Origin: Lepidodermella squamata
Taxonomy: Eukaryota > Animalia > Gastrotricha
Direction of reading: 5' to 3'
DNA: 64,000 bases
Assembly: GCA_047495785.1 (NCBI GenBank)
Contig: JBLDXI010000029.1
Location: 1,860,001-1,924,000 of the forward strand
Shown here: in pieces, positions 7,212 to 56,114 of the stretch
How the letters are laid out: each line of letters begins with the position of its first letter
Numbering within the stretch: position 1 is the first letter of the stretch
Notes under the pieces: model-generated
What the model was told of the DNA's origin: nothing
Databases searched by the model: none
The model's input: the letters and a program-made list of their open reading frames with translations, nothing else
Translations under genes and position numbers: made by a program

Positions 7212-7724
7212 AGACGCTCCAGAAAGCCAATTTTAATACGAGACAAGAATAGTCCGAAAACCGCATCAAATGTAATGCCTATGTATACCAAATTTTTGTA
7301 TGATTCAACTGAAATAAATCACCAGCTTTTAATTCTCAAAATAGAATTGGGAAAGAGATGACAATCGGCCCGCATATTGAGTCGAGGCCGAAAACCGATG
7401 TAATGAACTTTCATGACGCTGGAAAAGAGATTGGGTCCCTTGGCTTTCAAACTAACTTGCATAATATATTTTGCAATAAACTCGTTTTGATGGACAACTT
7501 CTTGCACTCTAAAAGGTATCTTTTTTCTCGCGGACGATAATTACTTGACACGATTCGAGTCATTCGTCATTCGCCATTAGCTTTGAGGAAGATTGAGAAA
7601 TAATTATCGACTAAATGTAAGGCATTTTGAAATTAGCAGTATCAATCAGGCTAACCCCCTCGTTTATGAAAAGCTTTTATGCAAAATCCGTGAACTAAGA
7701 AACATACAGCTTTTTGAGTCACAA

Positions 7725-18108: not shown

Positions 18109-21100
18109 ATATTGCGAGGCAATCGGCGGCGATTTTAAAGTGAATATTTTTCATGGGGTTTTATGCTGCTTTGTTGTGTCACCCTGTCCTTATGAAAAAA
18201 CATCATTTAAATTCCTTGGGGAAATTTGGATTGAGTACAAGCTTTTTAAGAATTATTAATTGTTATAAAGCTGACACCGATTAGATTATTTTTGTTGAAA
18301 AAACATGTTATTCATATATCGACCCGGAAACGCAGCCGATAAATAAAGTTTTTTCCTTCTTTAGAGGGTCCGAAAAAAACTGGAGTTAAGCGTTCACTCC
18401 AACCCCGACGTTAAAAAAACTTGAAAAATAATAAATAAAATAAAAAAGAGTAAAGAGTCCATGTCCAAGGCAAAACGGCAAGAAATCTGGAATTTCTATC
18501 GAGCTGGGTAACACATTATTTTGAATAAATGCTTGGTGTTGGTATTTTTCAATCAATTCGAGAATTTTGGATCTCGGTTGTTAGCTGCGCTATAATTATA
18601 ACCGCGGTCAAGCTGTCCATACTGCTTTTTTCAATGCACAGCAATCAGCAACGCAAAAACACGCTAGCTTTTCCTCACATTGCAATAAAAATGAGAGGCC
18701 GGTTTTATTGCCCCTGCGTCTGGGCAGCAAGTCGTAGTGAGACTTGTTATAAATGAGCTGATAAATAGCAACCAAAAGCCACGCCCGGAATTATTTTAAA
18801 AAGCTCGACACACAAATTCGATATTTTCATTACATCGATTGTAGGAGGTGAGATCTTTCATGGAATCTTGAGTTTTCTTTTAATAACAGTTCATAATCTC
18901 CTATTCCCATCACTACACATCTCTCAGCCTCCTCGTCTCATATTTTGCTCCCTTTTTTGCGAGTAAGAAATTGCAAAGAAATTTCAAAAAAATCCGCCTT
19001 AAAAAGGGCGAAATGGGCAGTTTTCTCATTTTTCAAATTAATTCCTAGCGGATTTTTGTCATCGCTAGTTTGAGGTTCAGGGCTGTGTCGTTTGTTCAGG
19101 GTTACTTATAGGCATTTTTCGATGATTTAGGCAAGCTTGGCGAAGGATTAGATAATTGTTGAATCGATGTCGTCATTTTCTAGATTTTTTTTATTTTTTT
19201 TTCATACAACTAATTATTCTATTTCCAGGTTTGAAAAGGTGTGCACAATGTTCGAAAATTTCTAAATTTTAAATTTTAAATTTCTAAATTTTAAATTCGA
19301 GGCTTAATCATATCATTTTTCCAAAATTCGAGTTCTGCGTCTTCACTTTTTTTATCGCCCTTATCCTATAATTTTCCGTATTACGTGAGTCTTGTGGCTG
19401 GGCGGTCAGTCAACAGCCCTTGAGAGTCCATATCGATTCCAAGTACGTACGTAAATACGTGATTTTATTTTTCAACCGGCTAGGAACCCAAATTTGATAA
19501 ATTTTCAAAAAATATTTTGCAGGACCTATTTTTAAAATTGGGACAGAACGCAAACTTGACAAGTCTCATTTTCAAAATATTTCCTTCAATTTCACAACTG
19601 AAAAAAGTGGAAAGTGGAAAGTTGAAAGTGGGTGCCAAGCTATTTTGCTAAAACCACGGATAATTTAAACGTAATTTATTTAGAATTTTAAAGCAATCCT
19701 GATATTTCAAAAAATTCAGAAAATTCAGTTTTGGAATAAGAATGAATTTATTGAAAATTTGATCAACTCACATTTGAGTCATTTTTAGTTCCGCAAGAGG
19801 GAATTTCGACTATGCTAGAAATTAAGACCCTAATTTTCTAAATAGCATAGGGCATCATGTAGCTAAAATAATAAATTCCTAACAGCCGTAATTAATTTGA
19901 CTTACCTATATTGAATTTATTGGCAAATCTTGTTTCTGTCATTTTACTTCTCAATTTGTTTATATTTCTAGATTGAATCCTTTAATCATAATTAGTGTTA
20001 AAAAAATCCGTGATCCACTTTCAGACATTTTTTTCCGAAATAATAGAAAAATGTTGATTCATTCGACTTCCTTCCTTAATGAATCATCTCTGTAAATTTA
20101 AGTCGTTAATGCAACAATGGAGAATTAAATCGGTAAAAACCTGCTAATCGCCTCATTTCCTCTAATTACACTTATGCTCTCAATTGAATTAACAAATTCT
20201 CCATTTTTTTAGCCCAATTGCTCCTCCCTCCAGCGCTTTTCTGTCGTCTTTAGCGAGGATCGTTCATCTTATATCGATCGAGTCAAAATAATAACTCCAA
20301 AGCACGTGTTTCTCGCGCGATAGATTGCCCATTTAACCAGCTGTGGCGGCGTGCGTCGATTTCTCGGCAAATAATGCACTGACAGCTGATGTTATCCGCG
20401 CGCATAAGCTGGCCGCGATAATAATTCCACAGCTATTTAGCATTTTTCTGCGGAAATTAGCCAAAATCAGCTAATATTCCGTATATATCTAATCTATTAC
20501 AAGTTCGCATCGTTATCAGTCTCAATATTGTACTTTGGCCTTAGCCAAATTGCCATGCCGTACTCCTTTTCGGTATTCAGCTTTCATCTAGTTACATTTG
20601 TCCAAATCCAAATGGCCAGTAGGCGAAAAAATCCAAGGGCTAAAGTTCACTTTGTATGGCGCATAGGTGGCGCCATTTTTTCAACATATGAATCCATTCA
20701 TAAAACTATGTATATTATCAAGTAAGTTTTGTGTTTACAACATAAGGCGAAATGTTCTTCTTGACGGACATATTCAAATTATTACTCAAACTATACTGTC
20801 CACGCTGTACAGCAGCGATTCATGAAGAGGCTGTTCGCTAGGATTTTAAGAATGGAAAACTTTTTTGTTAATGGACAGCTCGCCTCCAGTGCGCGCGCGT
20901 TTTCTCTCGTAAATAATAGCAAAAATATAGTATGATTAAAACAAAAGCCGCGCACTCGACAAAAAGCCCGCTGCTGTCTGTAACCGTTGCTGGTACCCGT
21001 TGCTGCTTGTGGTGGTGGTGGCATGATCAAAGCCTACACGCGCGCGCATACAGGTACGGCTCTCTATTGTCGCCGCGCAATTCATGCGTGGGCAGACGGA

Positions 21101-21380
21101 GGAGCTTTACTACACACTGGCGTTTGTGTGTTTGTATACTGCTATCATTATACATGCTGCTGATGACAAGCGGCCATGCAAAAAATTGTTGTGAATGGAG
21201 CGCTCTGTATGTGTTCATAATCTGCGCACTTCTTATCCTATTTAGGCTCGATCATTTAAAGGCCACAACCTTTGTTTGACTAGTCGCTCGCTCGTGTTAC
21301 GTGGGCACGCCCTGAAAACCACTTTCAGTTCCTCCTCGAATACATTAAGCCATTCCGCATTTTTAGAGAAATTAATCATC

Positions 21381-22819
21381 ATGACAGAAAAACCGGTCAA
21401 GGTCTACTCTCAGAAGATATTGGACGATGAGATCAAAAACGGCCGGTGGTTGTTGATTTTCGAATCGAAGGTGTACGACGTAACATCCTGGGCGCATCGC
21501 CACCCCGGCGGGCCTCTTCTCATCCAACACGTTATCGGCAAGGATGCTACAGATCAAATTCGCGTCAATCATTCCGAGGAAGTTATTCGGAAGATGAAAG
21601 TCTTCTGCGTCGGCACGATTGGTCCCGATGTTCAGAATTGCAACATGCCGCTATCGATGGCCTTCCGCAAGCTGCACGAAGAACTTACCGAGGAAGGATA
21701 TTACAAAACTGACTACGGATTTTTCGCGATTCAATACGCGAGGATTTTCGCCCTCTTTTTCCTATCCCTTTTCATTCTCTACCAATGGCACCATACCTTT
21801 TTGGGATGTTTCGCCTCGGCGTTCGTTATGGGATGGTTTTGGCGTAAGTTGAAATCTTGCTAAAGATGACTTTATTTTAAGAATATTTGGTTATCTAGAG
21901 CAAAGTGCGTTTATCGGCCATGATACCGGCCACAATGGAATAACCCACGACCGGTTCGTGGACACCCTGGTCGGCATTGTTCTTGGAAATACCCTATCTG
22001 GAATTAGCATTGGCTGGTGGAAGGGGTCTCACAATGTCCATCATTTGATAACGAATGACCCAGAGCATGACCCGGATATTCAGGTATGATTCAGATTTTC
22101 TGACCTAGATTCCTGTGAAATTAGGACATTTTTAGCATTTACCATTTTTGGCTGTTTCAACTCGATTTTTCGACTCGCTTCATTCAACGTTCCACGGCCG
22201 GAAACTGCATTTCGACTTTTTGAGTCAAATGATGGTTGCGATTCAGCACTTGCACTACTTCCCGTTGATGATGGTTGCGAGGGGCAATCTTTACATTCAA
22301 AGCTTCATCTATCTGGCTAAACACAAGACTTACATGCGTTGGCTCGAAGTCGTTTGTCTATGCTTGTACTGGGTTTGGTTCGTCAATTTACTCCTCGCGA
22401 TTCCCGAAACGAGCCATCGCGTCATGTATTTCTTCGTCTCGCTCATTTCTTCCTTCGTACTGCATCTTCAGATTAACTTATCGCACTTTGCCATGTGCAC
22501 CGAGCCGCCTGGCGAGGATGAAGTGTTTATCAAGCACCAGTTGCGGACAACTTTGGACGTTGAGTGCCCGGAGTGGTTCGATTGGTTCCACGGCGGGCTG
22601 CAGTTTCAAGTGGCCCACCATTTATTCCCTCGCATTCCGCGTAATAATCTTCGCAAAACCCGTGATAGAATCGTGCAGTTCTGCAAGCGACACAACTTGG
22701 TTTACCACTGCAAAACCTTCACCGAGGGCAATGTCTTCGTGCTAAAACACCTCAAAAGCATCGCCGACCAGGTGCAATTTCTAGCTCAGGTTGCTATGGA
22801 GAACAAGCAAAAGATTTAA
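21381..22819 (+). CDS. Cytochrome b5-fused front-end-type desaturase (delta-8 sphingolipid desaturase-like), 3 exons: 21381-21843, 21899-22083, 22136-22819
   Basis: HPGG heme motif; His boxes HDTGH, HNVHH and QVAHH; GT-AG introns of 55 and 52 bp splice in frame (WQQSAFIGHDTGH; DPDIQ^HLPF). Confidence 0.92.
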
Positions 22820-23240
22820 TACTCTCGTATTTTAATCACTCAATCTTATGTGTTGTATATTGGTTGTGTAACCGTTAATGTTATAATGAACTGTTAAACG
22901 CCCGGACAACGAATCTTCTCTTTGTTTACTGATACCGAACGAGTAGCGTCTGCGTGCCTAATTATGTGCGGTCTTCATGGTCAATAATTATCCGCAACGC
23001 CATATCTATTATGACATGTTTATTCAACTACTTGTGCCTTCTTCGTGCTTCAGCTAAGAGCACGACCGTTTGTACCATACTCGATTTGCGTGACGTGAGA
23101 CAAACCACGTGTATGATTATTTTTTAGAACAAAAGACAAAAAATCGAATTTATTATTGATTCTCTTCCAATAAGAACTTTTCTGATGAGATTTTGCAACT
23201 AATAATATTGTTTTAATTTTTAGATTTTTTAAATGAAAAA

Positions 23241-24702
23241 ATGACAAGTAAGCGGGTCTTCACCTACGACGAAGTGCAGAAGGAGGTGAAAAGCGGCCGA
23301 TCGTTGTTGATTTTCGACCGGAAGGTCTATGACGTTACGAAATGGAAGACGATTCACCCAGGCGGCGAACTCACCATTCGTCATATGCTGGGCCGCGATG
23401 CCACAGATCAAATTTTGACAAATCACTCAGAAGCCGTTGTTGCTAAATACATGAAAATGTTCATCGTCGGCGAAATCGATGACGAGAAGGCGAAAGGTGT
23501 CTACTACGACCGGCCTCTATCGCTGGCGTTTCGGAAACTCCATCAGAAAATGAAAGACGAAGGTCTTTTCACAACTCGACCATTCTACTACGCCCGTCTC
23601 TACACCGCGATTCTATCGATGTGGGTCATCTCTGCGACTCTGCTGTGGAATTATGGCGACAACATTTTCGGCGTGACAGCAGCTGCTATCTTCCTCGCTT
23701 GCTTCTGGCATCAGTCTGCTGGAGTCATGCATGACACTGGGCACAATGCGATAACTCAAAATCGGATAATTGACACATGGGTCGGCATTATCTTCTCTAA
23801 CTGCTTCACCGGTTTCGCTGTTGGCTGGTGGAAAGCCTCACATTTCATCCATCACTTGGTTACAAATGACCCTGAGGTAAGACTAACCGAGACTTGTTCC
23901 CGTGATTTTTGCAAACGTTTCCTCTTCTTATTAGCACGATCCTCATATTCAACTGATGCCGTTTATTGCCATTACAACTCGGTACTTTGACACCATCTAC
24001 TCGACTTTCTATGAAAAGTACTTCCACTACGACGCCTTCGCTAAAATTGTGGTTCCCCTGCAGCATTTTACCTTTCTTCCATTGATGCTTTTCGCGAGAT
24101 TCGTCATTTACCAGAACGGCGTCGGTTATCTGCTGAAATTCCGGCCCCCGCTCTGGAAGACAGAACTGGCTGCAATCGGTGTTTTCTGGGCCTATTTTCT
24201 TACAATGTGTAGCTGGATTCCAGATCCTAGGCTTCGTGTCTATTTCTTCTTCACTCCAATTTTTATCCTTATCATCCTTCAGCTGCAGCTATTCGTCAGC
24301 CACAACGCAATGTCGACGGATGTTATGGCTGAGGATGAAGATTTTGTGTCTTACCAGTTGAGGACTACTCTAGACTATCACTGCGATGAATGGCTCGACT
24401 GGTTCCACGGCGGCCTTCAATTTCAAGTTGCTCATCACTTTTTCCCTCGTCTTCCGCGGCATAATCTTAGGGAGGCTACGAAACACGTTTTGCAATTCAT
24501 TCGAGAGAACAAACTTCCTTACCATTCTGTCAGCTTCACTGGTGGCAATGTTGATCTGCTGAAACATTTAAAGAACATTGCTGAGGAAGCTAAGGCATTG
24601 GCGAGATCGGCGAAAGATCAGTACGATTTCTTGAAAACGTGCCAAGAACAACGCGATCGGTTGATCGACAAAGATTGCCCGACCAAACGAAGCGAAAAAT
24701 AG
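23241..24702 (+). CDS. Second cytochrome b5-fused desaturase (delta-8 sphingolipid desaturase-like), 2 exons: 23241-23876, 23935-24702
   Basis: HPGG, HDTGH, HFIHH and QVAHH motifs; a 58-bp GT-AG intron joins TNDPE^HDPHIQLMP. Confidence 0.92.
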
Positions 24703-25119: not shown

Positions 25120-27583
25120 TTACCAAACGGTACATTTGTCGGTGGGATTCATAGGGCTTCCAGCTGGGCAGTTGAAAGCACTAGCGAACTCGGGCATATT
25201 GGAAACAGTTCCAAGAACGCGATAGATCGCAGGCGCGTGTTCGTCATTTAGTATCTGTTCAGCAATACTAGCTCGATCCAATTCCCCACACCAAGAGTTG
25301 CCAAACGAGAGGAAGAACAGCTGATCAGCAGAAAAGTCGAATCCCTGAATAGCCCGATCATCGCCACTCATTTTGAAGGCCTTGTAAGCCGCACGAAGAC
25401 CGCTGTTATCGCCAATATTTTCACCAAGAGTTGAGCTGCCATCGACATAGAAAATGCCGTCGTAGGTGTAGTTCGAATACTGTTTGACTAAACACTGAGC
25501 GCGATTGTCGAACTCCTTTCGACTCCCCGGGGTCCACCAATCACGCTGATTCCCATCCTTATCGAAGCGGCTACCTTCGTTATCGAAAGCATGGCCGATT
25601 TCATGCCCGATTGTCGCTCCAATTGAGCCGTAGTTCAAGGCATTGACCGTATCAGGCCTCATTTCGATATCGATCATTCCTGCTAGGATGAAAATGGTGT
25701 TAAGAAAAGGTTCGTATGCAGCATTTTGAATCCATGGTAACATTGGCCAGGCCTGAAAATGAAGGAAGTTGATAAATCAAGGAATAGGAAACAAACTTAC
25801 GCTTCGGTCAGGTTTATCATGAGGATTATCGAACCTATTGAGCTTGAACACGTGCCAGCTGACCAAATTTGGCACGTAGTTGTCGCCAACGGACCAATTG
25901 ATGAAAAGGTTGTCCATAAGCGAGGCATCTTTGAACCAATTCGGGAAAGCGACATCATACTTAAGAGCGTCCAGCTGAAATTTAGTTGGGGAATCAATAT
26001 GTTCAGCAAAAAATGTCTCAAAATACCTTCACAAGCGCGTTGGCTCGTGTTTCACTATCCAGCCATGTCGCTGTTTCGATCAAACTTCGAAAGGATGAAA
26101 GGATATTTTTCGTGAGTACCACTGTCTAGAAGATTCAGAAGTGAATGGAGAAAAATGGAGAAACAGTTCAGGTACGGACCTCTGGCTGTTCAGCGTTATT
26201 GAAATTTTGATCGAGGTACATTGCTGACAGAACCATACCGATCCCGCCAGCGTTGAATTGCATTTCTTGGAGACACTTCATCTCACCGGTGAAAGGATTC
26301 AAAATATCGGAATATTCAGCAATAGCCTGGTAAACGATGTAATTGTGGAGAGCCTTTCGACCTTTTTTAGTTTCGAGGAGCTTTCTGACGGAACTACCTG
26401 CTACTATGAAAGCGACAAGATTGTCAATAATCACAGGGTCACTCGAAGTTATTTTGATGTTCTTCGACCGATGAAACTCGTCGAAAAAACCTTGCAGATA
26501 CTGCTGCCAATTCATGTAACCAACTTTTTTCTGCAGCCAATCGACATTGGTCTTGCTTTGCCGCAGGTCGTGGCTTCTTTGTTTCTTATCCATAGGGTCA
26601 GCTTGTAACATTAGAGTTAGTTCGACTATATCGATGTAGACATCGGCGTCATATTGGTTGAAAAGCTGCAGAAATTGTTTCATAGCCGAAAAATCCACTT
26701 TTGATGAGAAAGGGCTAAATGCCATCATGCTCTTGCTCTTGACGTCATTCGGATCAGGAATAACCTGGAAAACAAGCATAGAATAATCTCAATCCCATGA
26801 TACCCAAACCTGGAAATTAAATAGTCCTCTTGAAGTAAGTCTATCCCGAAGTGAAAGAAGATTTTCTAGGCTCCAATTTGGCGGAACTTGATCCTCTGTC
26901 TTGATGAATCCGCCTAGGGCTTCGACGATTGTAGCCATTGTCTTTGATGCCTGATTGTAGTCCCACTTTTTGCAAGCTGCGAAGTACCGTCTGGCTTTTC
27001 CAAATGTTTCGGGGTCTCCAGGGCTTGGATCACTTTTCAAAAGTCGCAAAATTTCAGCATCTGCAGGAGGCATGAGCTCGACTCCAACGCGATGAGCGTG
27101 CTTTTTCGGAAAGATTCTTCGTTTCCCAACATTCATAACCGGGTCCTTGTAAAGGCCGCATGTGTATTGGTAGAAGTTTTCGCACGGGTTGACTGACGTG
27201 TTCATGAACCTTTTCAAATCCTCAGCGGCTTTAATGCAATTCGGTGTTGAACATGCACTAACATCGGAATTATAGCTCCAGTCAAACTTAGGTTGTCGCC
27301 TATAATAGGGATTGAATCGTGGCGTTGTCACTGCGAGGTCAGATTCAACCTTGGCCATCCCTTGATACAACAGTGTTGCCAGAACAAATACGGTACCAAG
27401 CAGGACACAACAAATCAATAGAACCAGCCATAGATTTTCTTTCTGCCGCTTGAAAGTCGGTGATCGTAGGCCTGGAAAAAATTAGAAGACCGTCATCGAA
27501 GACAGCGGACTGCGGTCATACTCCTTACTTGTGGTCTCATCCGCTTCGAAGAGATCTTCGGGAATAACTTTCAAAACACCCAT
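25120..27583 (-). CDS. M13 family zinc metallopeptidase (neprilysin/ECE-like), 6 exons, type II membrane protein
   Basis: ATG 27583, TM anchor, VNPCENFYQYTCG, NAAY, HEIGH, GENIGD and C-terminal CPAGSPMNP..KCTVW. Five short GT-AG introns splice in frame. Confidence 0.92.
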
Positions 27584-29399
27584 TTCTAATAAAATAGGAT
27601 AGAGCAACAGAATGGCTTCGTTTACCTCGTTTCATGCCTCGAATTGCTCAGTTAATTGCTCATTAAGGCGGCGGCGCGCCATCTAATCCACTTGAACCTC
27701 GAATACGAATTATTTTGTCGAGACACATCCATAGCGGAATTATGAAACTTTTAGAGGTTCATGCAGTTGTTAATTCCGCCAGATTTCGAGTTCCCAGAAA
27801 AAGCAACTAAAGCCTACAGCAAAACCGAACTCTGAAACGCTATAGGCGGCATTCGACTAAAATTTCAGGCAGCTTTTGAGGTAAAAATGACGATTGGAGA
27901 AGAGGCAGTGTTGGTAACTCGCTAAGTTATAGTTTCATTATCAGTATGCCGGTTGATGTTTAGAGTACATGAGAATGAGTGATTCCTTGGACCTTAAGAA
28001 ATAATGATTATAGTTTCCGCAACAAAATAAGCCAAATTTAGGTTTATTGTCTTTTATTCCGAGCAATCTACCAAACAGTGCATTTGTTAGAAGGATTCAT
28101 AGGGCTATTAACTGGGCAGCTGAATGCTGAAGCGAATTCCGGCATATTAGCAAGAGTACCCAGAACTCGATAGAGCTCAGGCGCATGTTCATCCTTCGCA
28201 ATCTGCCTCGCGATTGACCAACGATCAAAGCTATTGCACCAGTATTGCCCGAAAGCAATAAAGAACAGTTGTTCAGAAGTATAATTCAGCAAGCTGTTGA
28301 TCAGCCGATCATCTTTACTCTCCTTGAAAGCAATGTAGGCAGCTCTAAGGCCGCTATTATCGCCAATGTTTTCACCTAGGGTCTTCTTACCGTCCACATA
28401 AATTACGCCATCGTACGAAAACTTCGAATATTGATCAACTAAGCACTGAGCCCGAGTTTCAAATGCTTTCCTGCTAGCAGGGGTCCACCAATTGCGACGA
28501 TTTCCGTCCTTGTCATACTCACTTCCTTCGTTGTCGAAAGCATGTCCAAGTTCATGGCCGATAACAGCACCGACTGCGCCGAAGTTCAAGGAGCTGACTG
28601 TCTGAGGGTACAGGTGAACCTCGATCTATTGAGCCAATATGAAGATCATGTTCAGCTCTGGTTCGTAGTAGGCATTGTTATCCAACGGCAAATCAGGCCA
28701 TGCCTAAGCGAAAAAAAGCTATACACGAATAAGTGGCTGGATCTACAACTCACGGTTCTATCTGGCTTATCGTGAGGGGCGCCCATTCTCAAAAGCCGGA
28801 ATCGATGGTTATTCATTATATTCGTTGAAAAGTCATCGGTAATATTCAGCCCACTATACTTCTGATCCATCAAGGTTCCATTTAAGAACCAAGAGGGAAA
28901 AGCTACGTTGTATCCAATCGCTTCAAGCTAGAATAGCAAAGGAATCAAATTCATCCCCGGAATCACTTTCCTACCTTGGTCAAAGCGTTCTGCCTCGTTG
29001 AGTCATCATTCCATGCAGCAGATTCAATGAGTTTGCGGAAGGATGAAATCATAGTCTTAGTCATATCGGTTACCTAAACATCGATGATTTTGCGCTAAAG
29101 GCGACCAGCGAGAAAAAACCTCTATACAGAGTACTGCGCACTATAAACAGTACTACGCGCGCGCATAATACTATGAAATATACTTATAGCCCGCATTCGT
29201 TGTGAAAAATAATGAATGCACTGGACAAATGACCAACAAATATAATGTGTTTTTGTGGATGTTTCCATGAAATTTTCGGATTACCTGGTGGAGAACAGTC
29301 GAACGTATCCAGAAATTGATAAAAATGCATGTGTAACCGTGGGTTTTCTGCCGTTAGGCGACCTGATAGCGATCCGAAAGCGCAAAAACCTTGGAAAAA

Positions 29400-33623: not shown

Positions 33624-36376
33624 TATTATACGCGCGCGTAGTACTTTTTATAGTGCGCAGTACTCCGAATACGCGCTAGTAGCCCTGCATACTTTTATGT
33701 ATGCTGCAGAGTTTTTTGAGCGTGTATGCGATCGGTCTGTTATAGCGTAAAACCATCGACATTCAAATTCACTACCGAGATTATCTGAAATCGGAAAGCT
33801 TACTTCAACGCGATGCTCATTGTTGAAATGGTTGTTCAGATACAGAGCAGAAAGAATCATGCCTAAACCATGGTCATTCTTCATCTCGGCGAAGCAGATC
33901 GTTTCAGTAAGTGGCTCATCGCGTTCTTCGTCAACGTTCTCGTAGTAATCAATCAAAGTTGCAGCCACAATGAAATTATGCACAGCTTTACGCCCCTTGG
34001 CAGTTTGAGTCATTTCATTAAGCTCCTTGAAAACCTTCAACACCAAATCAAGTTGCTCGATATCCACAGGATCTTCAGGGCTGATGTTGACGGGCGTTCC
34101 GCTTTTCACGTGGATTGAGAAAAACTGTTGGAAATAAACAAGCCAATTCACGAAAGGAGCTTTTTCTTGCAGCCATGAGATGCTTTTCAATTCGGAACCC
34201 GAGCTGAAGACTTTTCTGACACCATCGTTCGCTTGGGAGCCCATGTCAACAACGCCAGCAACTTCGAGAGCGTCAGTTTTCACGTCGCGACTCGACTTTC
34301 CAATAGCTCGCATTACACCCTCAATTTTGTCCCAGAGTTTAGTGTAGATTTTCTCAACCGGTGAGATGCGGATGATGTTTTCTTTCAACACATCCTCCGG
34401 GTTCGCGACAACCTTTTAAAATTGGCGAAATATCAAAGTGTTCCAAATTTTTCAAATTCTCACTTCTAGGGTGAAAAATCCATTTGCTGAAAAGTAATCT
34501 CGTTTCAGCAACAGCTTTTCGAGGCTCCAGTTCTGGGGAATCTGAGATGCGTCATTGATGAAACCTCCCAAATTTGACAGAATGTTTTCCAAAGCTTTTG
34601 CGTTATATTCTTGTTTCCATTGAGTGCAAGATTTGAAGTATTGCCGGGCCTTGCCGAAAGGAGCAGGTTCGCTTGGTTTGGAATCAATTTTTAGCAATCG
34701 AATGATTTCTTGCTTTATCGAGAATTCCTTGCCGCGAAGTATGGTTTGATGCAGTTTCGGAAGCTGTGTACCATGGCCATCCCAATTACCGCAAGCGAAG
34801 TGGTAAAAGTTTTCGCAAGGATTGACGCTCGAGTTAATGTTATCAGCAATCTTCGAACCAGCTTCGTTACAGCTCTCAGTATGGCACCCATTATCGTTGG
34901 CGATAGAAAGGTGCCCACTGACATTCCATATTACCGGAAAGCTGTAGGATTTCTCATTATTCGAATCACTAATAACCGGATTTGTGCCTTTTGTAACTTG
35001 CGTGCGCAGGACGATCGCTAGAGCCAATGTAGCGCAGCTTAGCAAGGCACAAATGGAGCAAAGCACGCACAATCCAACACTGAGCTTTCTTGACTTTTCA
35101 GCCACCACCAAAACTTCACAAAGGATCTCACTAAAAAGTCAAACAAGGATGATTTTCGACCGCTCACCTGCAGCTTCGTCTGTTTCGCAAGTTGATTCGT
35201 AAATTCCCATTTTATTCTCATAAATTGTAAAATTTTTCCAAATAATTTGCAGTTCATAATAGCAGGGTAATTTTTAATAGATTGTAATTAGGTGTCTAAG
35301 GATCATAATTTCAGAGATCCTGTTTTATGCCTTAGAACTTGGAAATCCCTTACCATAATCCGTTTCCCGGGCAACTGAAAGCAGCTGACAGTTCTGCCAT
35401 AAAGAGGCCGAGATGGGATAAAGATTAATGATGCATGGGGAAAATTCCTTCGATCAGCTTGGAAATACTTTTACTTTACATGGCGCACTATGACTGTACG
35501 AATGAAATGGAGAACAATTTTTCGGCAAAATAGTCTAACCTATCATCCTATTTTCAAAGGATTTCGTACTCGCATGAGTACACCAATTGCGTTGATTTCT
35601 GAGTATATTCTTTCTTACTCACATCCTTTACTGTCGACACTATGTCGATTTCATGGCTCAATTTTGCTAACATTCAAGGTGCTGACTTTCTAACGATATA
35701 GATGAACCTAGGACAAGCAGCAACGGTTCGGCGGCAATTACAATACAGCGTACCGACGTTCGTTGTTGCGCCGTTTGTTTTGAGGCTAGGCGATTTGCCA
35801 CATCTGTGCAGAATTGCCATCATGCTTCGCACCGGCTGATAAATTATGCATTGCTTTGGCATGCGTTGTGCACATTGAGCAAAATCGGAGCAATTGAGCG
35901 AAAACGCTGTCAAGGACCGATTCACTTATAGAGAATAATTTCGAAACATCCAGAACAACACATATTTTAAATTCGATTTAAATTCGATTTTTCCATATCA
36001 CTTCGATATTAGAAGTGATCACTTCGTTCTCTATGGATTTTTCAAACACCGCCAAATGCACAGGCTGTCTCAAGTTTGTGAGCCGAGGTTTATAGCGTCC
36101 AAACTATATATACTTACTCAAACCGTCCAAGCTAGATGAGACGATTACACCATAGCGGCACGTAGGTCGGCAGCGGCTATGAAAATTGAATGATATTGCA
36201 GTTTTAGTCTTTTAAGCCGCTTATAAGGTGAAGAGAATTTTCTGCACCACACAGAAACAATTTCTTTCCAATTTTTTAACCGGTCGCACCCCGGCCGTGT
36301 CGACTTTACAGAACCTGGACTGATGTGACCTGAACAATATTTAAACCCTTCTTTTGAAGCTGTTAACATCTGACGT

Positions 36377-36449: not shown

Positions 36450-36903
36450 ATGAAAAGACCTGCTCTCGGTACATTTTAAGTCTGCTTTGATTTGACGAAA
36501 TCTGCATTTCCGTCATGATAATTCTTCTTGATTAAACCGCAGTTTTGATTTGCTTCTCCGCCATTATTGTCACCGTCATGGGTGATGAAGGTGATGAAGG
36601 CGAGACCAAGTGTTCCCATGAAATTCGTGCATTGGTTCAGTAAGCACATTTTTTATTTTGTTTATAAAATATCACAAAATAATTAAAAAGGAGAGTGTGC
36701 AATGGGGATGAAGTCTGCCTGATCAACGTAACTACCCAATGTAATGATTTTGGTACATCAAACGACTGTACATCAGCAATGGCCTGCGCGTAAGTTGCTC
36801 CTCGCACAACCGATGAGCATGAATATGTTTAATAATATTTCGTTTATGTTGTTTTGCACTGGTAACTTGTAGAAAACGTTTTGCGGCTTCTAACAGCGGG
36901 TAA
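36450..36903 (+). CDS. Small secreted six-cysteine peptide, 81 aa, 4 exons: 36450-36468, 36543-36639, 36691-36789, 36873-36903
   Basis: Three GT-AG introns (74, 51, 83 bp) splice to MKRPALVLICFSAIIVTVMGDEGDEGETKCSHEIRALVQRVCNGDEVCLINVTTQCNDFGTSNDCTSAMACAKRFAASNSG*, with a classical signal peptide and six mature Cys. If intron 3 is retained the protein ends ...MACA*. Confidence 0.72.
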
Positions 36904-37880
36904 ATTCAGAATTGCTGGGACCAAAGCGCTCCAAGCCATCAAACCAGCATTCCCCATCGGTTGTCCCGAAAAAACTGTAAGAATCGATAGTTATAAAAGC
37001 CTGATCGATGCGCTTGAAAATCAATAATGTGGATGCTTATCACGTGCTTATTACACGATGTCGTATCGTCTAAGGCAATTTCTTCCAATAGCCGATTGAG
37101 ATATCTCAATGAGCAATCCGAATTGTTCCCAACGTCATTTTCAGTTATTTTAATCAGTTTTTAAACTTTGGAAACCAAGCAAGATTACAGAATAACCCTT
37201 TGCCTATCCAGCAGAGCCCACTTTCCCTAATACTTTGTTCCGTATCTGCGTGTTTTATGAGTTTTTAAAAAGCTAACGTATTTTCACAGTAACTGTCTTC
37301 TGGCCTTCTGGGTCCATTAAAACTCTTTATTAATCAATTAGCAGTCGGGCTCTTAACTACATAACTTATCTTAATCTTGACTACATACTCTTAACTAAGC
37401 ACTTAACTATATTGTGATCATGATATAAAATAAAAATAGCAGCCTGCTGCAATATCGAAAATGATATTTATTAAAAATGTCGGTAAAGAAAAAGCTGAAT
37501 GTGAACAATTAATATAGCGTTCCTGGAACCTTACTGGCGCGCTTTCGTGGCTTCAAATATATGTGGATTAAGTAATATTATGCGGATCCATCAAATTTAA
37601 TGAAATTTAGAATAGATTGGATAAGTGTAGTGAACGAACGAAATTATGTTCCCAAACGATTTCATGCGTAAACCTTCAACCTTCTAAAACATTATATTTC
37701 ACTGTCACATGTGGTGTGTATAACAAGAGGTGCTCGCAGACGAATTTTTCATTGGCGAGTGTGGCGGTGCTTCGCAGGGCAATGTCATAAAAACGTTTAA
37801 CTATTTCTAGCATAATAAGTTGAAAGCGATAAGTCTTTCAATCCTTACGATAGGTCATAAGCGATAGGTCATTCACTCCT

Positions 37881-40339
37881 TCACCAAACCGTACACTTCA
37901 CAGGTGGGTTCAACGCACTGCTTGCCGGGCAACTGAAAGCGGCTGAGAACTCTGCCATATCAGAAACCGTGCCGAGAACTCGATAAAGATTAGGCGTATG
38001 AGGATCCTTCCCTTCGATCAGATCATCAATACTTTTCCTATCGAATTTCTCGCACCACGACTGCCCGTATGAAATGAAGAACAGCTGTTCGGGAGAGTAG
38101 TCTAAGCCATCGATTCTCCGTTCATCCTTGCTGTCCCTAAACGCTCGATAAGCCGCTCGTAGGCCACTGTTATCGCCAATGTTTTCACCAAGGGTCTTCT
38201 TGCCGTTAACATAAATTACGCCATCGTACGAAAACTTCGAATATTGATCAACTAAGCATTGGGCCCGAGTTTCAAAGGCTTTCCTGCTCGACGGGGTCCA
38301 CCAATTGCGACGATTCCCGTCCTTGTCAAACTCACTTCCTTCATTGTCGAAAGCATGCCCAAGTTCATGGCCGATAACAGCCCCGACTGCGCCAAAGTTC
38401 AAGGCGCTTACTGTCTCAGGATACAGGAGAACTTCAATCAGCTGAGCTAGGATGTAGATCTTGTTCAATTGTGGCGAATACACAGCGTTGTACAATACTG
38501 GCATAGCAGGCCATTCCTGAAGCATTTGAATATAGAAAGAAGTGTGCGCAGATGCATATTATTACGTCTCGATTTGGCTTGTCATGAGGAGCTCCTATTC
38601 TCGAGAGCCCAAATCGATAAATGAGCTCAAGATTGATAGAGTAGTCATCCGTAACATTTAACCCATTGTACCGCTCATCTATCAAGCTTGCATCCGAAAA
38701 CCAAGGTGGAAAAGCAACGTTGTAACCAATCGCATCAACCTTGTAAAAAAATAATAAGTAAATGTACCAAAGAATGTAGGTACTGCCCCACCTTGGTCAA
38801 AGCGTTCTGCCTAGTTTCATCGTCAAGCCAGTTCGCGGATTGAATCAGCTCTCGGAAGGAGGAGATCATTGTTTTGGTCATTTTTGTTACCTATCATATC
38901 ATATATAGTAAGGCAAAAGGTAAGGGCGGCTGGAAACTTACTTCGACACCGTGTTCATTATTGAAATTGTTGTTCACGTAGAGAGCTGACAAGAGCATAC
39001 CTATGCTCGGGTCGTCTAGCATTCCATTCAAGCAAGCTAAATCTGCATCGTCATCGTTCGGTGCCTTCAGGACGACCGAATAGTAATCGACTAGAGTTGC
39101 AACAACTATGAAGTTATGAACGGCTTTTCGGCCCTTTGGATTTTGAAGCATTTCTTCAACTTTCTTCAATATGTTGATCATCAAATCGAATTGGTAGATA
39201 TCAACAGGATCTTCAGGTTTGATGTCTACAGTTTTTCCGCCTTTTACGTGAATTGTGAAGAATTGTTGGAAATAAGCGAGCCAGTTCATAATAGGAACTT
39301 GCTGTTGGAGCCATGAAATACTTTTCAATTCGGAACCCGAGCTGAAGACTTTTCTTAGACCCTCCGGTTGAGATTCCGAGCTAACAACGCGCGCGACCTC
39401 GTAAACGTCGGTTTTAACGCCACTATCTAGCTCTCCGACCGCTTGCAAGACGATCCCAACTGCATCCCAGATTTCCGAACTGATATTTCTGATAGGTTCG
39501 AGATGGATAACGTTATCCTTGAGTACATTCTCTGGATTGGCGACAACCTGAAACTCCTAATCAATACCGGGAATCACATAAAAAGGAGAGCTTACATTGA
39601 GTTGAAAAATTCCATTTGTTGAAAAGTAGTCCCTTTTCATCAGCAGGCCTTGAAGACTCCAATCGGCTGGTATCTGAGACTCGTCATTTATAAACCCTCC
39701 TAGAGTCGAGATGATATGTTTCAAACTCCCAACCCCATTTTCTGGATTCCAAAGTGTGCAAGTTTTGAAGTGTTTTCTTGCTTTTCCAAAGGCCACTGGT
39801 TCGCCCGGTTTAGATTCTGCTTTCAGCAGCAGTATAATCTTTTCTTTGACCTCATACAACACGCCTTTAGAGTCCCCGGTGAGAGCTTTGCTAGATCTGC
39901 CTTTCCAGTTGCCGCAAGCGAATTGGTAGAAATTATCACATGGATTGACACTCACATTAATGTTGCTCTTCAACTTCTGCCCAGCTTTACGGCAGCTTTC
40001 GGAATCGCAAACCTCATCATCAGCTTCGACTGGTCGTTCGTACCTTACGACTGACGCGGGGTATAATATGAAAGACCTTTCATTTGCAATTCTTCCGGAG
40101 TTGGGATTGTGCTGTTTTGCCAGCAGCTGCTCCCGAATCGAAATAGCGAGAATCAATGTAGTGCAGCTTAGGATGAAACCGATCAAGACAAACAAGCAAA
40201 GCATGGGCTTCTTCGATTTCTGCTTGCCAGTTAACACTTGAGAAACCCAAGGGTGTAAAAGAATGTTTCATCACCATTTGACAAATAACCACCTACCCGA
40301 TGTTTCGTCCGGTTCGCATGTTGCTGAATACGCTCCCAT
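37881..40339 (-). CDS. M13 family peptidase paralog 3, 6 exons, apparently intact
   Basis: ATG 40339, TM anchor, VNPCDNFYQFACG, NAVY, HELGH, GENIGD, KCTVW; introns at the same positions as in paralogs 1 and 2. Confidence 0.9.
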
Positions 40340-40920: not shown

Positions 40921-41995
40921 TTAGATGCGCTCGCACAGACCGGCATATACACCGGCTCCTTTGCAGGTCGTTCGAACGATTTTACCTTGATCAAGGATCA
41001 CACCTGCAAATGTTAAATCAACATGATTTAAAACATTGTTACAGTTATATCTAATTACAATGAAAAGCATCGTCGGGCGAGTCTGTAAAATTGAGAAAGG
41101 TACTATTGAATGGCTCTCCCGTTACCCAGGAATACTCAGCCAAATCCGAGCGTTTAGCACCGATCCAGAGTCGCCCGCCGTACCCAGCCACAAATGTTCG
41201 AGCCGCATTGTAGGTAGCTATACTTATCTTTGATTACAGCCAAGGATTTGCCGAGAGCTATGCATAGTCGGCTGCCTTAGGGGCCCTGTGGTATTAGTGC
41301 GCTGCATCTCAGCCAATGTCTGGATTATAGCATCATTTCAATCGCATTTGGATCAATGGGAAAGCCTGAACTTACAGCGCCCGCACAAAGACCAGGCCTG
41401 GTCGTTTCTCAGTTAGCATCGACAAAGCCCACGTCATCGATGCTCATACCTGTAAATCAAAACGAAAAGCAGCAGAAAATTTTATTCCATTTATCTTGAC
41501 CACTTCAATTTGACACCAAATCGCAAATCATTGCCTGAAATTACAAAATAGGAAAAACTAACACGGGCCGGTGGCAAACGGGCTGTTCGGCGCCCAAAAT
41601 GGTGAATTTATATCGACGAGCTGATTTACATCGTCCCATTTGAAGCTGGCCACGAGTCCGATATACGCCACAGTTGAGCCGAGAACTTGTTTAGCTGCTT
41701 CTAGATCGGCCGGGGTGCGGATTGTCGCCAGTTGTCCGCTCTCGTTTCGGCAGGCCAGTAATTGCGGCCGGAAGTAGTCCTTAGGTACCGACGACAGGAA
41801 ATAGCGATTCAAATCACGCTGACAGGCAGCGTAATTTTCAGCAAATTTCGTCGAATTCGAGTCCAATTTCACCTAATTTTCAAGCATTTAAATTTCGATA
41901 GAGGGACTAGTATTGGCTCACGATAGTAGTTCCGCTTGGGCGAATGTTGTAGCATTTCTTGCCGGCAGGAGTATCGCATTGTACAGCATTCTACA
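40921..41995 (-). pseudogene. C-type lectin domain gene (two CTLD-like units), apparently degenerate
   Basis: Exon-like segments translate to ACRNESGQLATIRT..VAYIGL..FKWDD..FWAPNSP, CIALGKSLAVIKD / RLWIGAKRS..YSWVTGEP and C....YAGLCERI*. There is a frameshift near 41225, stops between segments and no clear in-frame ATG. Confidence 0.6.
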
Positions 41996-43563
41996 TATTG
42001 AAGATTACGATTGACAAGATGGGATGAATTAGTTCAAAAGCCTTTAATAGCTGTTCAGGAGGAGACTAAACCTAGAGAGCGTAGTGATCACTAGATAAAA
42101 TTCAAGAGGTCATGGATTTTAAGTTTTGAAAAAGACTAAGAAAATCTCAGTGAATAGTCGTTCATTCATTACCAAGATGAGCAGCTGGCTTTTTTTCTGT
42201 ACACTTCGCTAGAAATCGTCGGTGTCATTGACAAGGCAGCGGGAAGCGGGAGCTGTTCAGGCGGCAAGCGGTAAAATCTCGGGTTGCCGCAATGAAACAG
42301 CGGATATGAGGCTTCACTGAGTCAGTATTGGCACATAATGCATGTGCCAATAGCCAATAGCCAATAAGAGGCACATAATTATGTGCCAAGAGCCACACCG
42401 TTTTTATTTTAGCTTCAGCAACACCGTATTCCTTTTCAAAACCGTGGCAATACGAAAGGTGGCACATCAACAATTGAGACACGAAATCTCTCATTAAGTA
42501 TGGCAGTGCCACTATCCGAAAGGCTACTTTATTTATGATGCGGCACGCGTCACAGTGGCAAGGTAAGCTATTTATATGTTCTGGCGAATGGTGATTAATA
42601 AATGTTTCGTAGGCAACGCAGGAAAGTAAGCGTCAATATTATAGAATTTTAAGCACGTTATCTAAGTTCTCTTATATCACGATTCGATATTTGTGGAAGT
42701 TGACAGTTGCGAATCACCAGTCGATAAGCGCTTTTTTGATGGCTTAGAGCGCCTCGGTCCAAGTAACTCTGAATTCATTCGCTGAATGCACGCGCAACGC
42801 GTTTTCTACGTTAAATGAAATATAAAATAGTAATTCCTGTTCAGCGGCGGTGCAAACTTACACGCAGGCCAATGCGGCAATGCAGTCGTCAAACTCATGA
42901 GCATCGCCACATTGGGCAAATATATCCCCCAAGCAGGCATCACTCTCTTGGCACCATCCGCTGTTTGAATATATTTTTTATGTAATTTCAAAAAATACAA
43001 TTTAGTTATAGTTACAGAATCATTTCATGATGCTCTGCAATACACTGATTAAGTTCATTTAAATCCATAGTTGCTGACGCTGTACCCATGAAGATTGCAG
43101 CTGCGCCGAAGAAGAAGAGCAAAACTGCGTTTCAATCACAAAAAAACGTGGCATCATTACTGAAACGCAAATTTTAGCAAATCAAAGCAGATATGAAATT
43201 TACCGATCGTAGATTTGTTCATCGTTGAAGTTATAGGAATCAACAAGTTGATGAGAATGTTTGAAGTGTAAAGTGTAGTATGTGAGCACAGCTTGCAAAA
43301 ACGATGAAAAACAGCTTCAAAGAAGGGGTTTATATCATCACCGGCAATTAGTGTTTTTTGACAGTCGTCCAGGGTTTTGTAAGGTGACATAGCTGCGGGG
43401 TGCAACATGCGGCAATAATGAGTTCGTATCAAGTTTGTTCTCTGTGGTGCATACGCCCATAAAGACATAAAGGACTTGCTGCTAGCCTCAAGAGAATTTC
43501 TGTCTCTTAGTAGCTCGACCGGCATGGCTACACAGAAAAAAGGACAAGAATAATTCATCCCTA

Positions 43564-44959: not shown

Positions 44960-47511
44960 TCACCAAACTGAACATTTGTTAGCTGGATTCATCGGGCTGC
45001 CAGCCGGGCAATTGAAAGCCCTGGCAAAAGCATCGGAATTCGCAACTGTGCCAAGTATGCGGAACAAACCCGGAGAATGAGGATCCCCATTTATCCGATT
45101 TGCAATCTCCTGTCTCGAAATGTCTCCGCAATAAAATTGGGCGAATGACAGGAAAAACAACTGCTCTGCAGTAAAATTCACACCTTTAATGCCCCTTGAG
45201 TCATTTGCCGCTTGGAACGCTTGATAAGCCGCTTTTGTGCCGCTATTATCGCCGATATTCTCTCCTAGGGTAAACTTGCCATTCACATAGATCACTCCAT
45301 CGACAGTGAAATTCGAATATTGTTTCACGAGGCATTGAGCACGCTCATCGAAGAGTTTGAGACTCTTATCCGTCCACCAGTTGCGATAGTTACCATTCTC
45401 GTCAAACTTACTGCCTTGGTCGTCAAAAGCGTGACCGATTTCGTGACCAATGATCGAGCCGATTGAGCCGTAGTTGATAGCGGCGATTGTGTCAGGGTAG
45501 AACTGTAAGTCGATAAGGCCTTCCAATATGAAAATCCTATTCAAATTTGACGCATAAGCAGCGTTTACAAAAAAAGGAATCGTGGGCCATATCTACGAAA
45601 AAATCTAAGAGTATTTAGCACCGATACGAGTTTCCTTACATTTCTGTTAGGAATTTCGTGAGGAACATCTCGAATTGAAGATTCAAATCTGTGTTCGTTC
45701 GCCACATTTGTTAGGTAACTATCAGTCACTTCAAGGCTTGCGAACAAGTTGTCGATATAGGTGGCGTTATGAAACCACTCCGGATGAGCGATTTCATACC
45801 GCACAGCATCCAACTGAAACATTGAATAGATGGATATGATGTGATAAGGTAAGAATGACAACCTTAATTAGGGCGTTGTTCTTAGTCACGTTGTCTATCC
45901 AGGTAGATTCAGATATCATCCTTCGAAATTCGGCTAAAATATCTTTCGTCATCCCCTCGACCTGTTGTATGAATAATTCTGAAAATTCGTTGATTAAATT
46001 AATACTTGGAACCTTTTCTGATTGATTTTCATCGTAGTGTGCATTAGTATACATTGCCGCTACTAACATTCCAACATGCGATTCATGGCGTGACATGAAT
46101 GTTAGACATAAATCCTCGCTTGTCGTCAATTCAGTATCGCCATACAACACGGCTTCGCCGTACTGAGCCAATACCAGAGTTATCAAATAATTTTTCAGAG
46201 CCTTCCTACCGCCAGGTGTTTTGTTGAGTATTTGAAGAGCTCCGAATATCCTACCCATATAGCTGCCACCAAAAATTACAACCTCGTCCTCCGAGTTAAT
46301 AGTAACGGGCTCCGATTCGGAAAAATAGAACTGCAGATACTGTTTCCAATCCAATACTGGAGCCCAGCTCTGCAGCCAAGCAACATCTTTCAGCTCGAAT
46401 CCAATCGCCAGGCCCGATTGGGCCTCCATTCGTTGGAGATTATGGTAAATTTGCTCCTCACTCTTCGAGGTCTGCAACAACAAGCTAACCATGCTCACAT
46501 CAGCGAGAACATCTTCGTTGGAAAACTCGATGAAATCGAAAACCTTAACCGCTGCGTCTACGATTAACTTTCGAGCGATAGGAATCGGCGTTATAGTGAT
46601 CGAGTTTCGCCTCAAAACATCCTTTGGATTCGCCTCGGCCTGGCAAAAATCATATAACAGCGCTTATAATGGCAAGTATTGCTTACTTCTATTTTGAATA
46701 ACCCAATCGACGTGTACTTGTCTAGCTTTTTGAGCAGGGTGAGCAAATCAAGGCCGTCCTTCATTGACGATGGCGAGGTAGCAAAACCTCCCATATCTGC
46801 CAGAATATCTTTCAAAAACTTGACATTTTCTTCTTTCTGGGTTTTGACGCAGGCTGCAAAGTAGCGTCGAGCTTTCCCGAAGGCTTTTGGCTCGCCAGGG
46901 CTGGGCTCACCTTTCAGAATCGAAATAATCTTGTCAGACACATTCCGCTGAATGCTGGTCCATTTTTGGATGTAGCTCATTCGGCTGCGCGATAAGTCGT
47001 AATCCGGGAAGGGTATGTCCGATTTCCAGTTACCACAGGTGAATTGGTGGAAATCTTCGCATGGACTTACTGAAGTGTCCATATTCTTCAAAATCTTCTC
47101 ACCGGCAGCGATACAGCTCTTGGTTGAGCAGCTATTGCCCTCATCGGCGCCGGAGTCGGATAGTGAACTAGGTAGATTGCTCAGCATTTCAAATAGTGCG
47201 GGATCATAATCTCCATCTACGTATTTCATGAACCCGAGCCGATCATCCGGAGTGCGATAGTGGTGCTTTGGTGAAGGACGCTCCAATTCTATTTTATCCG
47301 GTGAATCCTCTATTTCAACCATGGTAACCGCGGCAATAATAACTACTGTGATGACGATTACGCAACAAATGCATGCACAGCATTTTCCGCAACCTGAGCT
47401 GCTTGACCGCTGCGACAACAACGCTTAAGAAAAAATCCTTTAAGCAAGGCGTGGAAAAGTGGGCCTCAACTCACGAGCGATTTCATCGGCATTTGGAATC
47501 GATTGGGACAT
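44960..47511 (-). CDS. M13 family peptidase paralog 4, 6 exons, apparently intact
   Basis: ATG 47511, Cys-rich juxtamembrane segment (GCGKCCACICC) plus TM, VSPCEDFHQFTCG, VNAAY, HEIGH, GENIGD, CPAGSPMNP..KCSVW. Confidence 0.9.
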
Positions 47512-48850: not shown

Positions 48851-49387
48851 TCAGCATGAGTGGGCTGGAGTTCCGCGGACGTCCATTTCGTTCATCACAC
48901 GGCACGCACTGCAATGAGGGCAACAATACCAACAAAACGCTTCTTCGCAGAGACTCTGCAATAGAGAATGCATCCAATTGAATATTAAAATCAAATACAA
49001 TGGATAAGTATTTCGACTACTTGCCTCTACTCTCTTTTATTTATACAGTGAGGTGAAAATCGGGGAGAATGATACCCTCTGTTCGAAATTATACGGGAAG
49101 AGATAATTCAACAACTTTCCTACCTGTTTCACGTGATATAGGGAGCGGAAACGCGTTGATATCGGCTGCCAAATACAACACCAGGGCAGGCAACAAGTCT
49201 CGCCAATACGTGTTGCGGCACAGCTCATAAGTATCACTGGGCAAAAACAACCTACGCATCCATGCTTACAGCTGCGGCAACAGTCGGAACAGCCCACTTC
49301 GTACGGGGTTTCGAGGTTAGTATCCACAGGCGGTTGTGCTGGTGGTCTAGGAGCGGGTTGAGTTGTAACTGCTGCAACCTGAGACAT
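48851..49387 (-). CDS. PLAC8/cornifelin-like Cys-rich protein, 2 exons (49387-49124, 48955-48851)
   Basis: VTTQP N-terminus, GCSDCC..C..GCFCP, GETCCLP, RFRSLYHV, and second exon SLCEEAFCWYCCPHCSACRVMNEMDVRG. Confidence 0.85.
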
Positions 49388-51592: not shown

Positions 51593-52944
51593 ATTTAATA
51601 GTAAAAAGTAAAATAATTGATATCGTCTTGAGAACGAATATCGAATATAAGATGTTTACTACAACAGTTTTATTACTACAAAACGCGTGCTAGGTTATTG
51701 ATATCAAAAATGTGAGCAAAATGAAAGACTTGTAGTTGAGATTTTCCATTCATAAAAGATCCAAAACTTTGCTTGATTTTTCGACATACATATTTGGACA
51801 TGAAATGCTGCTGAAGGATTCGCTTAAAGCTCACATATTACTATTATTCAGCCATGTTATTTTAAATTATTTTGATTATTCATTATCATAATATCACGTG
51901 ATACGACTTGAGGTTTAAGGAAATTACAACTTTGAATATTACTCGCTGCTGTTTCCTGGAAAGATCTGCTCATCCAAGTTCGCCCTCTGATCTTTAATTA
52001 TTTTTAGTTTTGCAGTTTTGTCGGGGCAAAACGGTTGTAAAGGAATTAGGGGGCAAACAAGTCCTCAAAGCTCGCTCAATTTCGCTTCAATTTTCGTAAA
52101 AGAATGCTATCCCCTATCCCGTTAAAAATCCCATGAAAAATAGCTTGCTATCATAGCTAAACTACACCTCTTCAATCTATGTCTAACTTAGACCCAGAAA
52201 GCAGAAACCCCTGAACTAGGCCCAGAAAAGCGGAAAATCTAGACCTAAACAGGCTCGGGTCTCTAGGCCTAGCCTAGGCCTACAGACTTTTGATTGGATA
52301 CATGCTACTCGGTTGCTTTTGCCCCTGCGATGTCGATGTCGACCTGTTATGAGCTGCCATAGTTGACATCGTCGGTGAACGTGTAGGGCTCTGGTGGGTC
52401 GTAATCGAGTGCTTCATTCGGCCGGGCCACCGAGCGACTAATTCCAACATATACCTTCCTCATAGGAAACTCAAAGGAAGCTAGTATAAGCAAGCCAGAA
52501 TCCCACTTGTTTAACGACGATAATGACATATTGCTTGACAAATTTCTTTCTTAACCTATTTTTTAAAAACTGAAATTCAAGCTCTTCCCTCGTGCAACCT
52601 TGATTCAGTCACATGCATCACGTAGGCTATCATTGGGCATTCTGGACAGTTCAATTTTATGTCACGCTTTGAACTAGTAAAATTCGACACTTCCGCGGAA
52701 AAACACTAAAAGGTGCGCAGGTCTAACAAATTTATCCACCTTTTTGGCTAATGCACGATGCGAAGTCACAATTAGGAAGTTCGTCATTTTCGTTAGAGCG
52801 AAACAATTCAAAGACAGATTTTGTTTTGTAACATTAGACATGCACGCGGAAAACATGACAAAATTGAGGGGACATTATCGACACTATTTAAAGCGAAAAC
52901 AATGCTCAGATCATTCAGTTTCAGTCAGATTTTTTCCTTCTAGA

Positions 52945-55275: not shown

Positions 55276-56114
55276 AGCGAGGTGAACAACGCAATCTTCT
55301 AAAAATCGCTTTTTAACGAAAAATTGCTGGATACCTATAAATTATTCGCTAACATTTAAAAGTGAAGTTTCATCATCATCAAATGTATTTCCGTTATTGT
55401 GAAAATGAGCATTATTGACTGCATCTTGATCACAGAGGACAGTGCGGTCTACAGCTCTATCTCGCTTCGAAGATAATATTGATTTTCGAAGACTTTGCAT
55501 AAACTGTTCGAATAGATTTATAATGAATCGATGGCGGCAGTTTAAATAAGATGGATGATAAGTCAAGAACTAAAGTTATTGATAACGCGATGATCAGCAG
55601 TAAAAGTGGAGCGAGAAAGAACGCTTTCGAATTTTGAACAATTCGAATTAAACAAACTCAGTCTAAAAAAAATGAGATGATTAATAGAAATTGTATACTG
55701 TTGGCGGAACGCGTGCCGTAGCCTTTGACCGCAGCGAGTTATGAATGATATTGAATATTGAAGCTGAACGTGAACATTTTCACTAATGCATTTGAATCGA
55801 CAGCAATTAGTTTTTGAAAATTGAAAGTTCATTTCTTTGGCGAATTTGGATAGAAATTTGTTCTTCATTCACGACAGTCGTTTGAAATTCATGAATTAGC
55901 CTTAACCCTTGGCCTACATCCTACACCAATAGATAACGCGTAAAATTCAAGTGTTCTTCAATCAATTTATTATCTTCATCATTGTGAAAGTGTGCATTGA
56001 TTGCATCTTGATCACAGAATAACGTTCTTATTTCCTAACAAAGTTCTTTTCAAAATTTGAATATCGACTACAGCTTGCAGGTGATTTCAGGCTTCTTCAT
56101 GTCTCGTGGTTCGC

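Follow-up and report, generated by a model that had tools for sequence, protein, structure and literature searches.

A pair of small, ORF-hidden genes for putative secreted six-cysteine peptides among neprilysin-type genes of the gastrotrich Lepidodermella squamata

The window analysed here, by which we mean the whole stretch of 64,000 nucleotides at positions 1860001-1924000 of contig C29 in the 121.2-Mb, 151-contig assembly of Lepidodermella squamata, is eukaryotic DNA with very short introns and a GC content of about 43%. It carries a cluster of M13 (neprilysin-type) genes, among which are found a small gene, designated here gene A, and, 6 kb away on the opposite strand, its paralogue B (Table 1). 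Gene A is located between two M13 genes and B between two others, with a C-type-lectin-like gene sharing the spacer of B. The stray M13 fragment close to gene A is probably a pseudo-exon left by tandem duplications. The separate M13 C-terminal exon, on the one hand, and the N-terminal and middle exons next to gene A, on the other, could belong either to one gene with an intron or insertion unusually large for this genome or to two partial genes; in the ca. 5 kb between them there are several ORFs without a Pfam match. Two tandem genes for cytochrome-b5-fused fatty-acid desaturases of the front-end type (20932-24702, plus strand) adjoin the M13 cluster.

Other features of the window include five intronless-looking ORFs of 744-843 aa, at 1456-14196 and 52744-55275, with an ANF_receptor domain, two of which also match 7tm_3. 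According to these domain matches, the five ORFs are an array of predicted orphan class C (GABA-B/mGluR-type) receptors, one of which, intronless, had no match at E<=1e-20 in a database of 5.8 billion protein clusters. In a 116-aa ORF at 49037-49387 (minus strand), without a Pfam match, the N-terminus is Pro-rich and a stretch of 45 residues with ca. 14 Cys, some of them in CC pairs, comes next. At 56106-57513 the GC content peaks at 55%, versus ca. 43%, with long ORFs open on both strands, and the minus-strand ORF 56403-57464 bears a marginal HSP20/alpha-crystallin match at its C-terminus.

Table 1. Gene A, paralogue B, their neighbours and the insulin-family loci of the same genome. Positions are those of the window, except in the last row.
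Feature	Position	Strand	Remarks
Gene A promoter-like block	36339-36364	+	TATTTAAA plus downstream motif; 85% identity over 26 nt to the block of B (blastn, alignment)
Second TATAAA	36378-36383	+	67 nt 5' of the ATG; not conserved in B
Gene A, whole span	36450-36903	+	
Gene A exon 1	36450-36468	+	ATG and first 6 leader codons; ends in phase 1; 19 nt and donor GT, both as in B
Gene A exon 2	36543-36639	+	Remaining signal peptide, then the acidic stretch and Cys1, with most of the segment up to Cys2
Gene A exon 3	36691-36789	+	Cys2 to Cys6; 99 nt
Gene A exon 4	36873-36903	+	KR site, 7-residue tail and stop; 31 nt
Gene A 3' UTR start, conserved	36904-36943	+	Alignment to B
Paralogue B	42775-43222	-	Exons 43222-43204, 43124-43016, 42960-42862 and 42805-42775; 85 aa
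Paralogue B promoter-like block	43310-43335	-	Counterpart of A 36339-36364
M13 gene	25123-27289	-	
M13 C-terminal exon	28071-28700	-	Listed together with 33795-35114
M13 N-terminal and middle exons	33795-35114	-	Other side of gene A; divergent transcription
Stray M13 C-terminal-exon-like fragment	35368-35657	-	52% aa identity over 62 residues; just upstream of the 5' end of an M13 gene
M13 (neprilysin-type) gene	37884-40237	-	HExxH and type II membrane anchor; convergent with gene A, 3' end to 3' end (Pfam, tblastn, N-terminal translation)
C-type-lectin-like exons	41051-41872	-	In the spacer from B to the next M13 gene; WIGxxD-type piece and a Lectin_C match just under the cut-off (E=3.6e-4)
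M13 gene	44963-47130	-	Upstream of paralogue B
Insulin-family loci L007-L010	G000:C9:2384716-2488152		Two pairs ca. 100 kb apart

The first-pass annotation had described gene A as a gene of four exons hidden from the ORF track, and splicing of the window sequence by script reproduced that model exactly. The three introns, of 74, 51 and 83 nt, are all of the GT-AG type, and the spliced coding sequence of 246 nt is open and encodes a product of 81 aa. The longest piece of this product contained in a single ORF is 32 aa, and since none of the pieces exceeds that length the gene is invisible to the ORF track. The paralogue B described below keeps the same splice sites, phases, six Cys and KR, which further supports the model. 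Neither gene has an upstream ATG, and the nucleotide at -3 is an A in both.

The spliced translation begins with a leader in which Lys2 and Arg3 precede a strongly hydrophobic stretch at residues 5-16, and a rule-based prediction places signal cleavage before residue 21, with V-x-G at -3/-1. The basic n-region, the hydrophobic core of 12 residues (mean Kyte-Doolittle value of 3.13, and of 2.85 in B) and the small residues at -3/-1 thus agree, by these rules, with the signal peptide that had been proposed. Downstream of the leader, the acidic stretch DEGDEGE and the six Cys with spacings of x11, x5, x7, x8 and x5 were both seen as originally reported, and a seventh Cys is located within the leader. 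As for the dibasic KR site, which had been placed directly after the last Cys, it is present, at the exon 3/4 junction, and conserved, but one residue lies between it and that Cys; a 7-residue tail follows.

The search for paralogues that the first-pass annotation had recommended yielded one sister copy, B, which was the sole related locus when the whole genome was searched at the DNA level with both loci; no third copy was found by DNA, protein or profile searches. A and B have in common six splice sites, three intron phases, the start, the stop position, six Cys with identical spacing and the dibasic site, which is conserved as (A/V)-K-R. Exon lengths differ between the two by 0, 12, 0 and 0 nt, exon 2 being 12 nt, a multiple of three, longer in B, and intron lengths differ by 5, 4 and 27 nt, so that the exon indels are all multiples of three and the intron indels are not. 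Exon 4 is 31 nt long in both copies and ends with a stop codon at the matching position. In exon 3, 11 of the 32 residues are identical, all five Cys among them. Comparison of the two sequences provides strong evidence that A and B alike have been kept as coding genes of this four-exon structure.

Two other models for B were rejected. An upstream in-frame ORF (43558-43157, minus strand, 133 aa) might extend the protein at its N-terminus, but it was judged to be fortuitous, since A is not open in the corresponding frame, the indels upstream are not multiples of three and the ORF has no Pfam match. Nor was it accepted that the exons of B are 5' exons belonging to the C-type-lectin-like gene downstream of it, since A and B have in common exon 4, the stop and a homologous 3' UTR, and no lectin is found downstream of A.

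The homology between the two loci extends over a unit of ca. 0.6-0.7 kb, in inverted orientation, from a promoter-like block to the early 3' UTR. Identity is 77% across 36869-36943, and weaker conserved blocks reach ca. 37040. At the 5' end of the unit, we infer a promoter role for the conserved block that contains TATTTAAA. The first-pass annotation had pointed to a TATA box, which probably corresponds to the TATAAA nearer to the ATG of gene A; this element is indeed present, but the block conserved between A and B is instead the one located upstream of it.

The two copies have evolved in an uneven manner along their length. The mature coding part is less conserved than noncoding sequence and than the first portion of exon 2, which encodes part of the leader. 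Introns and flanks are 70% identical and coding sequence 57% (Fisher p=0.0025), and A and B agree at 18 of the 53 positions aligned between Cys1 and the stop, the stop itself included. The dN, of 0.60-0.75, is higher than the noncoding distance of 0.39, and the dS is 0.65. Selection on the peptide was judged from two sequences, A and B, for which dN/dS is 0.93 across the mature region and 1.18 for the non-Cys codons, with a bootstrap interval of 0.53-2.59 that spans values below 1; the M13 neighbours have a dN/dS of about 0.1. These figures suggest that a scaffold consisting of the Cys, the KR, the splice sites, the leader and the core promoter is held fixed, the other residues diverging at or above the neutral rate. 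Conserved Cys and leader accompanied by a hypervariable mature sequence, as in peptides of the pheromone type, are thus found in the A/B pair, and by analogy A and B would evolve as water-borne pheromones, toxins and immune peptides are known to do.

Relatives of the pair were sought with single exons, the joined spliced model being used in scripts for translation, composition and dN/dS. At E<=10, exons 2 and 3 of either copy matched no Pfam family and an exon-3 profile matched no PDB sequence, and the top score in the ESM Atlas, 0.79, was below the level of a lead. When 1.84 billion protein representatives were searched with the exon-3 profile (HMMER, no length filter), there was no full-length match but five weak multi-stretch matches, two of which were examined and are internally repetitive proteins; the product of A is itself absent from that set. 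An exon-wise search of JGI metagenomes found no relative, and no homology to catalogued bilaterian prohormones was found. In the genome itself, protein searches that used exon 3 of either copy recovered the query alone, while the two-row exon-3 profile recovered A and B alone, plus one chance-level match containing a stop codon; in the window, the Cys framework has two exact matches, A and B. The pair would hence appear, from its sequence, to be an orphan family of two members, with a Cys framework that is matched to no described family. The initial view of gene A as a gene for a novel secreted disulfide-rich peptide is in line with these results, the gene having been unseen before, belonging to no known family and having its dibasic site conserved.

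The features of the two products are consistent with the following maturation. The hydrophobic leader would direct co-translational entry into the secretory pathway, with the signal being cut near residue 20, and the six Cys would form three disulfides in a compact core of ca. 42 residues, probably helical. A convertase of the furin/PC type may cut at the conserved KR, after which carboxypeptidase trimming would remove the basic pair, the 7-residue tail being lost; at least 10 loci with a proprotein-convertase P-domain (P_proprotein) are present in the genome. The tail is not conserved between A and B, and it ends in Gly in A only. The released peptide, of 5.5-6 kDa and strongly acidic, would then act outside the cell. 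With regard to folding, the Cys1-Cys2 segment has a hydrophobic moment of 0.49 in A and 0.24 in B, and an AlphaFold run on exon 3 alone gave two short helices with a pLDDT of 47.8, which is unreliable. The predicted mature peptides have a net charge at pH 7 of -7.2 (A) and -11.4 (B), a pI of about 4.1, and 3 (A) and 0 (B) basic residues.

The most likely explanation, to which as a whole we assign a probability of about 0.6, is that a lineage-restricted gene encoding a small prepropeptide is present in two functional copies, A and B, and that the peptide is a fast-diversifying pheromone- or hormone-type ligand acting outside the cell. The main rival, which we consider unlikely, is a secreted disulfide-rich effector of the defence or toxin type, directed against microbes, prey or predators and diversified in an arms race. 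Small size, abundance of Cys, secretion and duplication would all fit such an effector, as would non-Cys residues that evolve at or above the neutral rate with scaffold and leader kept, since toxin and immune peptides typically display variable residues on a conserved scaffold and leader. However, there are just two copies in the genome, no toxin or defensin family was matched in Pfam or among PDB sequences when these were searched by exon, and both predicted mature peptides are strongly acidic. The net positive mature charge of defensins and cationic antimicrobial peptides is found neither in A nor in B, and so strong a negative charge speaks against a membrane-active antimicrobial peptide of the classical cationic kind. 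It is mainly because of this charge that a ligand is favoured over a defence role.

A functional tie between the peptide and the M13 genes is considerably less probable. The first-pass annotation had suggested that the peptide might be a substrate of the flanking enzymes, which, as neprilysin-type ectoenzymes, would switch it off; alternatively, it might be their inhibitor. Both copies do lie in spacers between M13 genes, which seem to be active and anchored in the membrane, the one that was checked having HExxH and a type II anchor. Nevertheless, the split between A and B (dS 0.65, noncoding distance 0.39) is later than that of any M13 pair (dS of at least 1.2, or saturated), the homology is confined to the short inverted unit with no repeated co-duplication, and the C-type-lectin-like gene intervenes between B and the next M13 gene. 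Moreover, a disulfide-locked domain of ca. 5.5-6 kDa would be at or above the size of the usual neprilysin substrates. A and B therefore go back to a single local duplication, which took place after those of the M13 genes, so that their linkage to M13 represents a single event and lends no independent support; the suggestion that the peptide is a substrate thus has no support beyond position. It is no more probable that A and B are the signals of a lineage-specific chemical-communication module, with M13 ectopeptidases that would inactivate them and adjacent orphan class C receptors that would receive them, in which the placement of all these genes would be functional.

Very improbable, in turn, is that the gene pair is non-functional, be it a chance spliced ORF, a duplicated pseudogene or a non-coding unit. 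The proteins of A and B are both missing from a collection of 15 billion proteins, and dN/dS is near 1, as would be expected if this were the case. Against it, the copies have diverged by ca. 42% in their exons and yet keep frame, splice sites, phases, six Cys, KR and stop, with indels that respect the reading frame in exons and not in introns. In a simulation of neutral drift, the coding sequence of A kept its frame and six Cys in 5e-4 of the trials at 30% divergence, which is the noncoding divergence between A and B, and in 5e-6 at 42%, the divergence observed in the exons, so that the probability of such conservation by drift is at most 5e-4.

The least credible of the alternatives is that A and B are divergent members of the insulin/relaxin superfamily, an interpretation raised in the first-pass annotation from a C-x11-C that encloses a probable helix, as B chains of insulin do, and now largely refuted on the defining features tested: the spacing in A and B does fall within the C-x(10-12)-C of B chains and is the one element that fits, but there is neither an adjacent CC nor a CC-x3-C-x8-C in either copy; a C-peptide is lacking, since the five residues between Cys2 and Cys3 include no basic pair and the sole dibasic site kept in A and B follows Cys6; the Cys1-Cys2 segment is interrupted by intron 2; in either copy, exons 2 and 3 are without a match to Pfam Insulin at E<=10; and neither the exon-3 profile nor exon 2 of A resembles the insulin gene of this same genome (hhalign, BLASTP). 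Canonical insulin genes, with the CC motif kept, were on the other hand readily detected in that genome, where four Pfam Insulin matches, three of them above the curated cut-off, are found on contig C9. The best of these loci has C-x11-C, a KR-flanked connecting peptide and CC-x3-C-x8-C in one open frame; an extra Cys adjoins its CC doublet.

The A/B pair represents an unannotated gene family with a new six-Cys framework and no relatives among ca. 15 billion proteins, in the barely studied phylum Gastrotricha, and it indicates that comparison of paralogues can validate tiny multi-exon genes that are missed by ORF-based annotation. In kind, it would be one more case of a lineage-specific, fast-evolving, secreted Cys-rich peptide, the ideas of an insulin and of a neprilysin substrate failing to hold. 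If the peptide is a pheromone or a hormone, it would open a first way into the study of peptide signalling among gastrotrichs.

Several known systems resemble the pair in part. With the insulin/relaxin superfamily (PF00049) it shares a secreted precursor with a signal peptide, C-x11-C, six mature Cys and a dibasic processing site, whereas the CC doublet, the A-chain signature, an excisable C-peptide and any sequence similarity are lacking in A and B. The pheromones of Euplotes, three-helix proteins with three disulfides, are likewise small, secreted and provided with six Cys, but their Cys spacing differs from that of A and B, they belong to a ciliate and are unrelated by descent, and the A/B exon-3 profile matched no PDB chain. 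In these water-borne pheromones only the Cys and the pre and pro parts are conserved and the mature sequence varies freely (PMC9542385). The A/B pair shows the same evolutionary pattern, which would be an analogy of mode rather than membership. Attractin of Aplysia is a secreted peptide of 58 residues with three intrachain disulfides, whose precursor consists of a signal peptide and a single product (PMC3484142). The A/B peptide resembles it in size and overall plan; attractin is N-glycosylated and has no sequence similarity to A and B, and a KR-plus-tail such as that at their C-terminus is not among the features given there for attractin (PMC3484142). Finally, although A and B have neither a conserved amidation signal nor repeated peptide copies, they resemble the convertase-processed precursors of peptide hormones in having a signal peptide, one bioactive-looking module and a conserved KR, in a genome that contains convertases.
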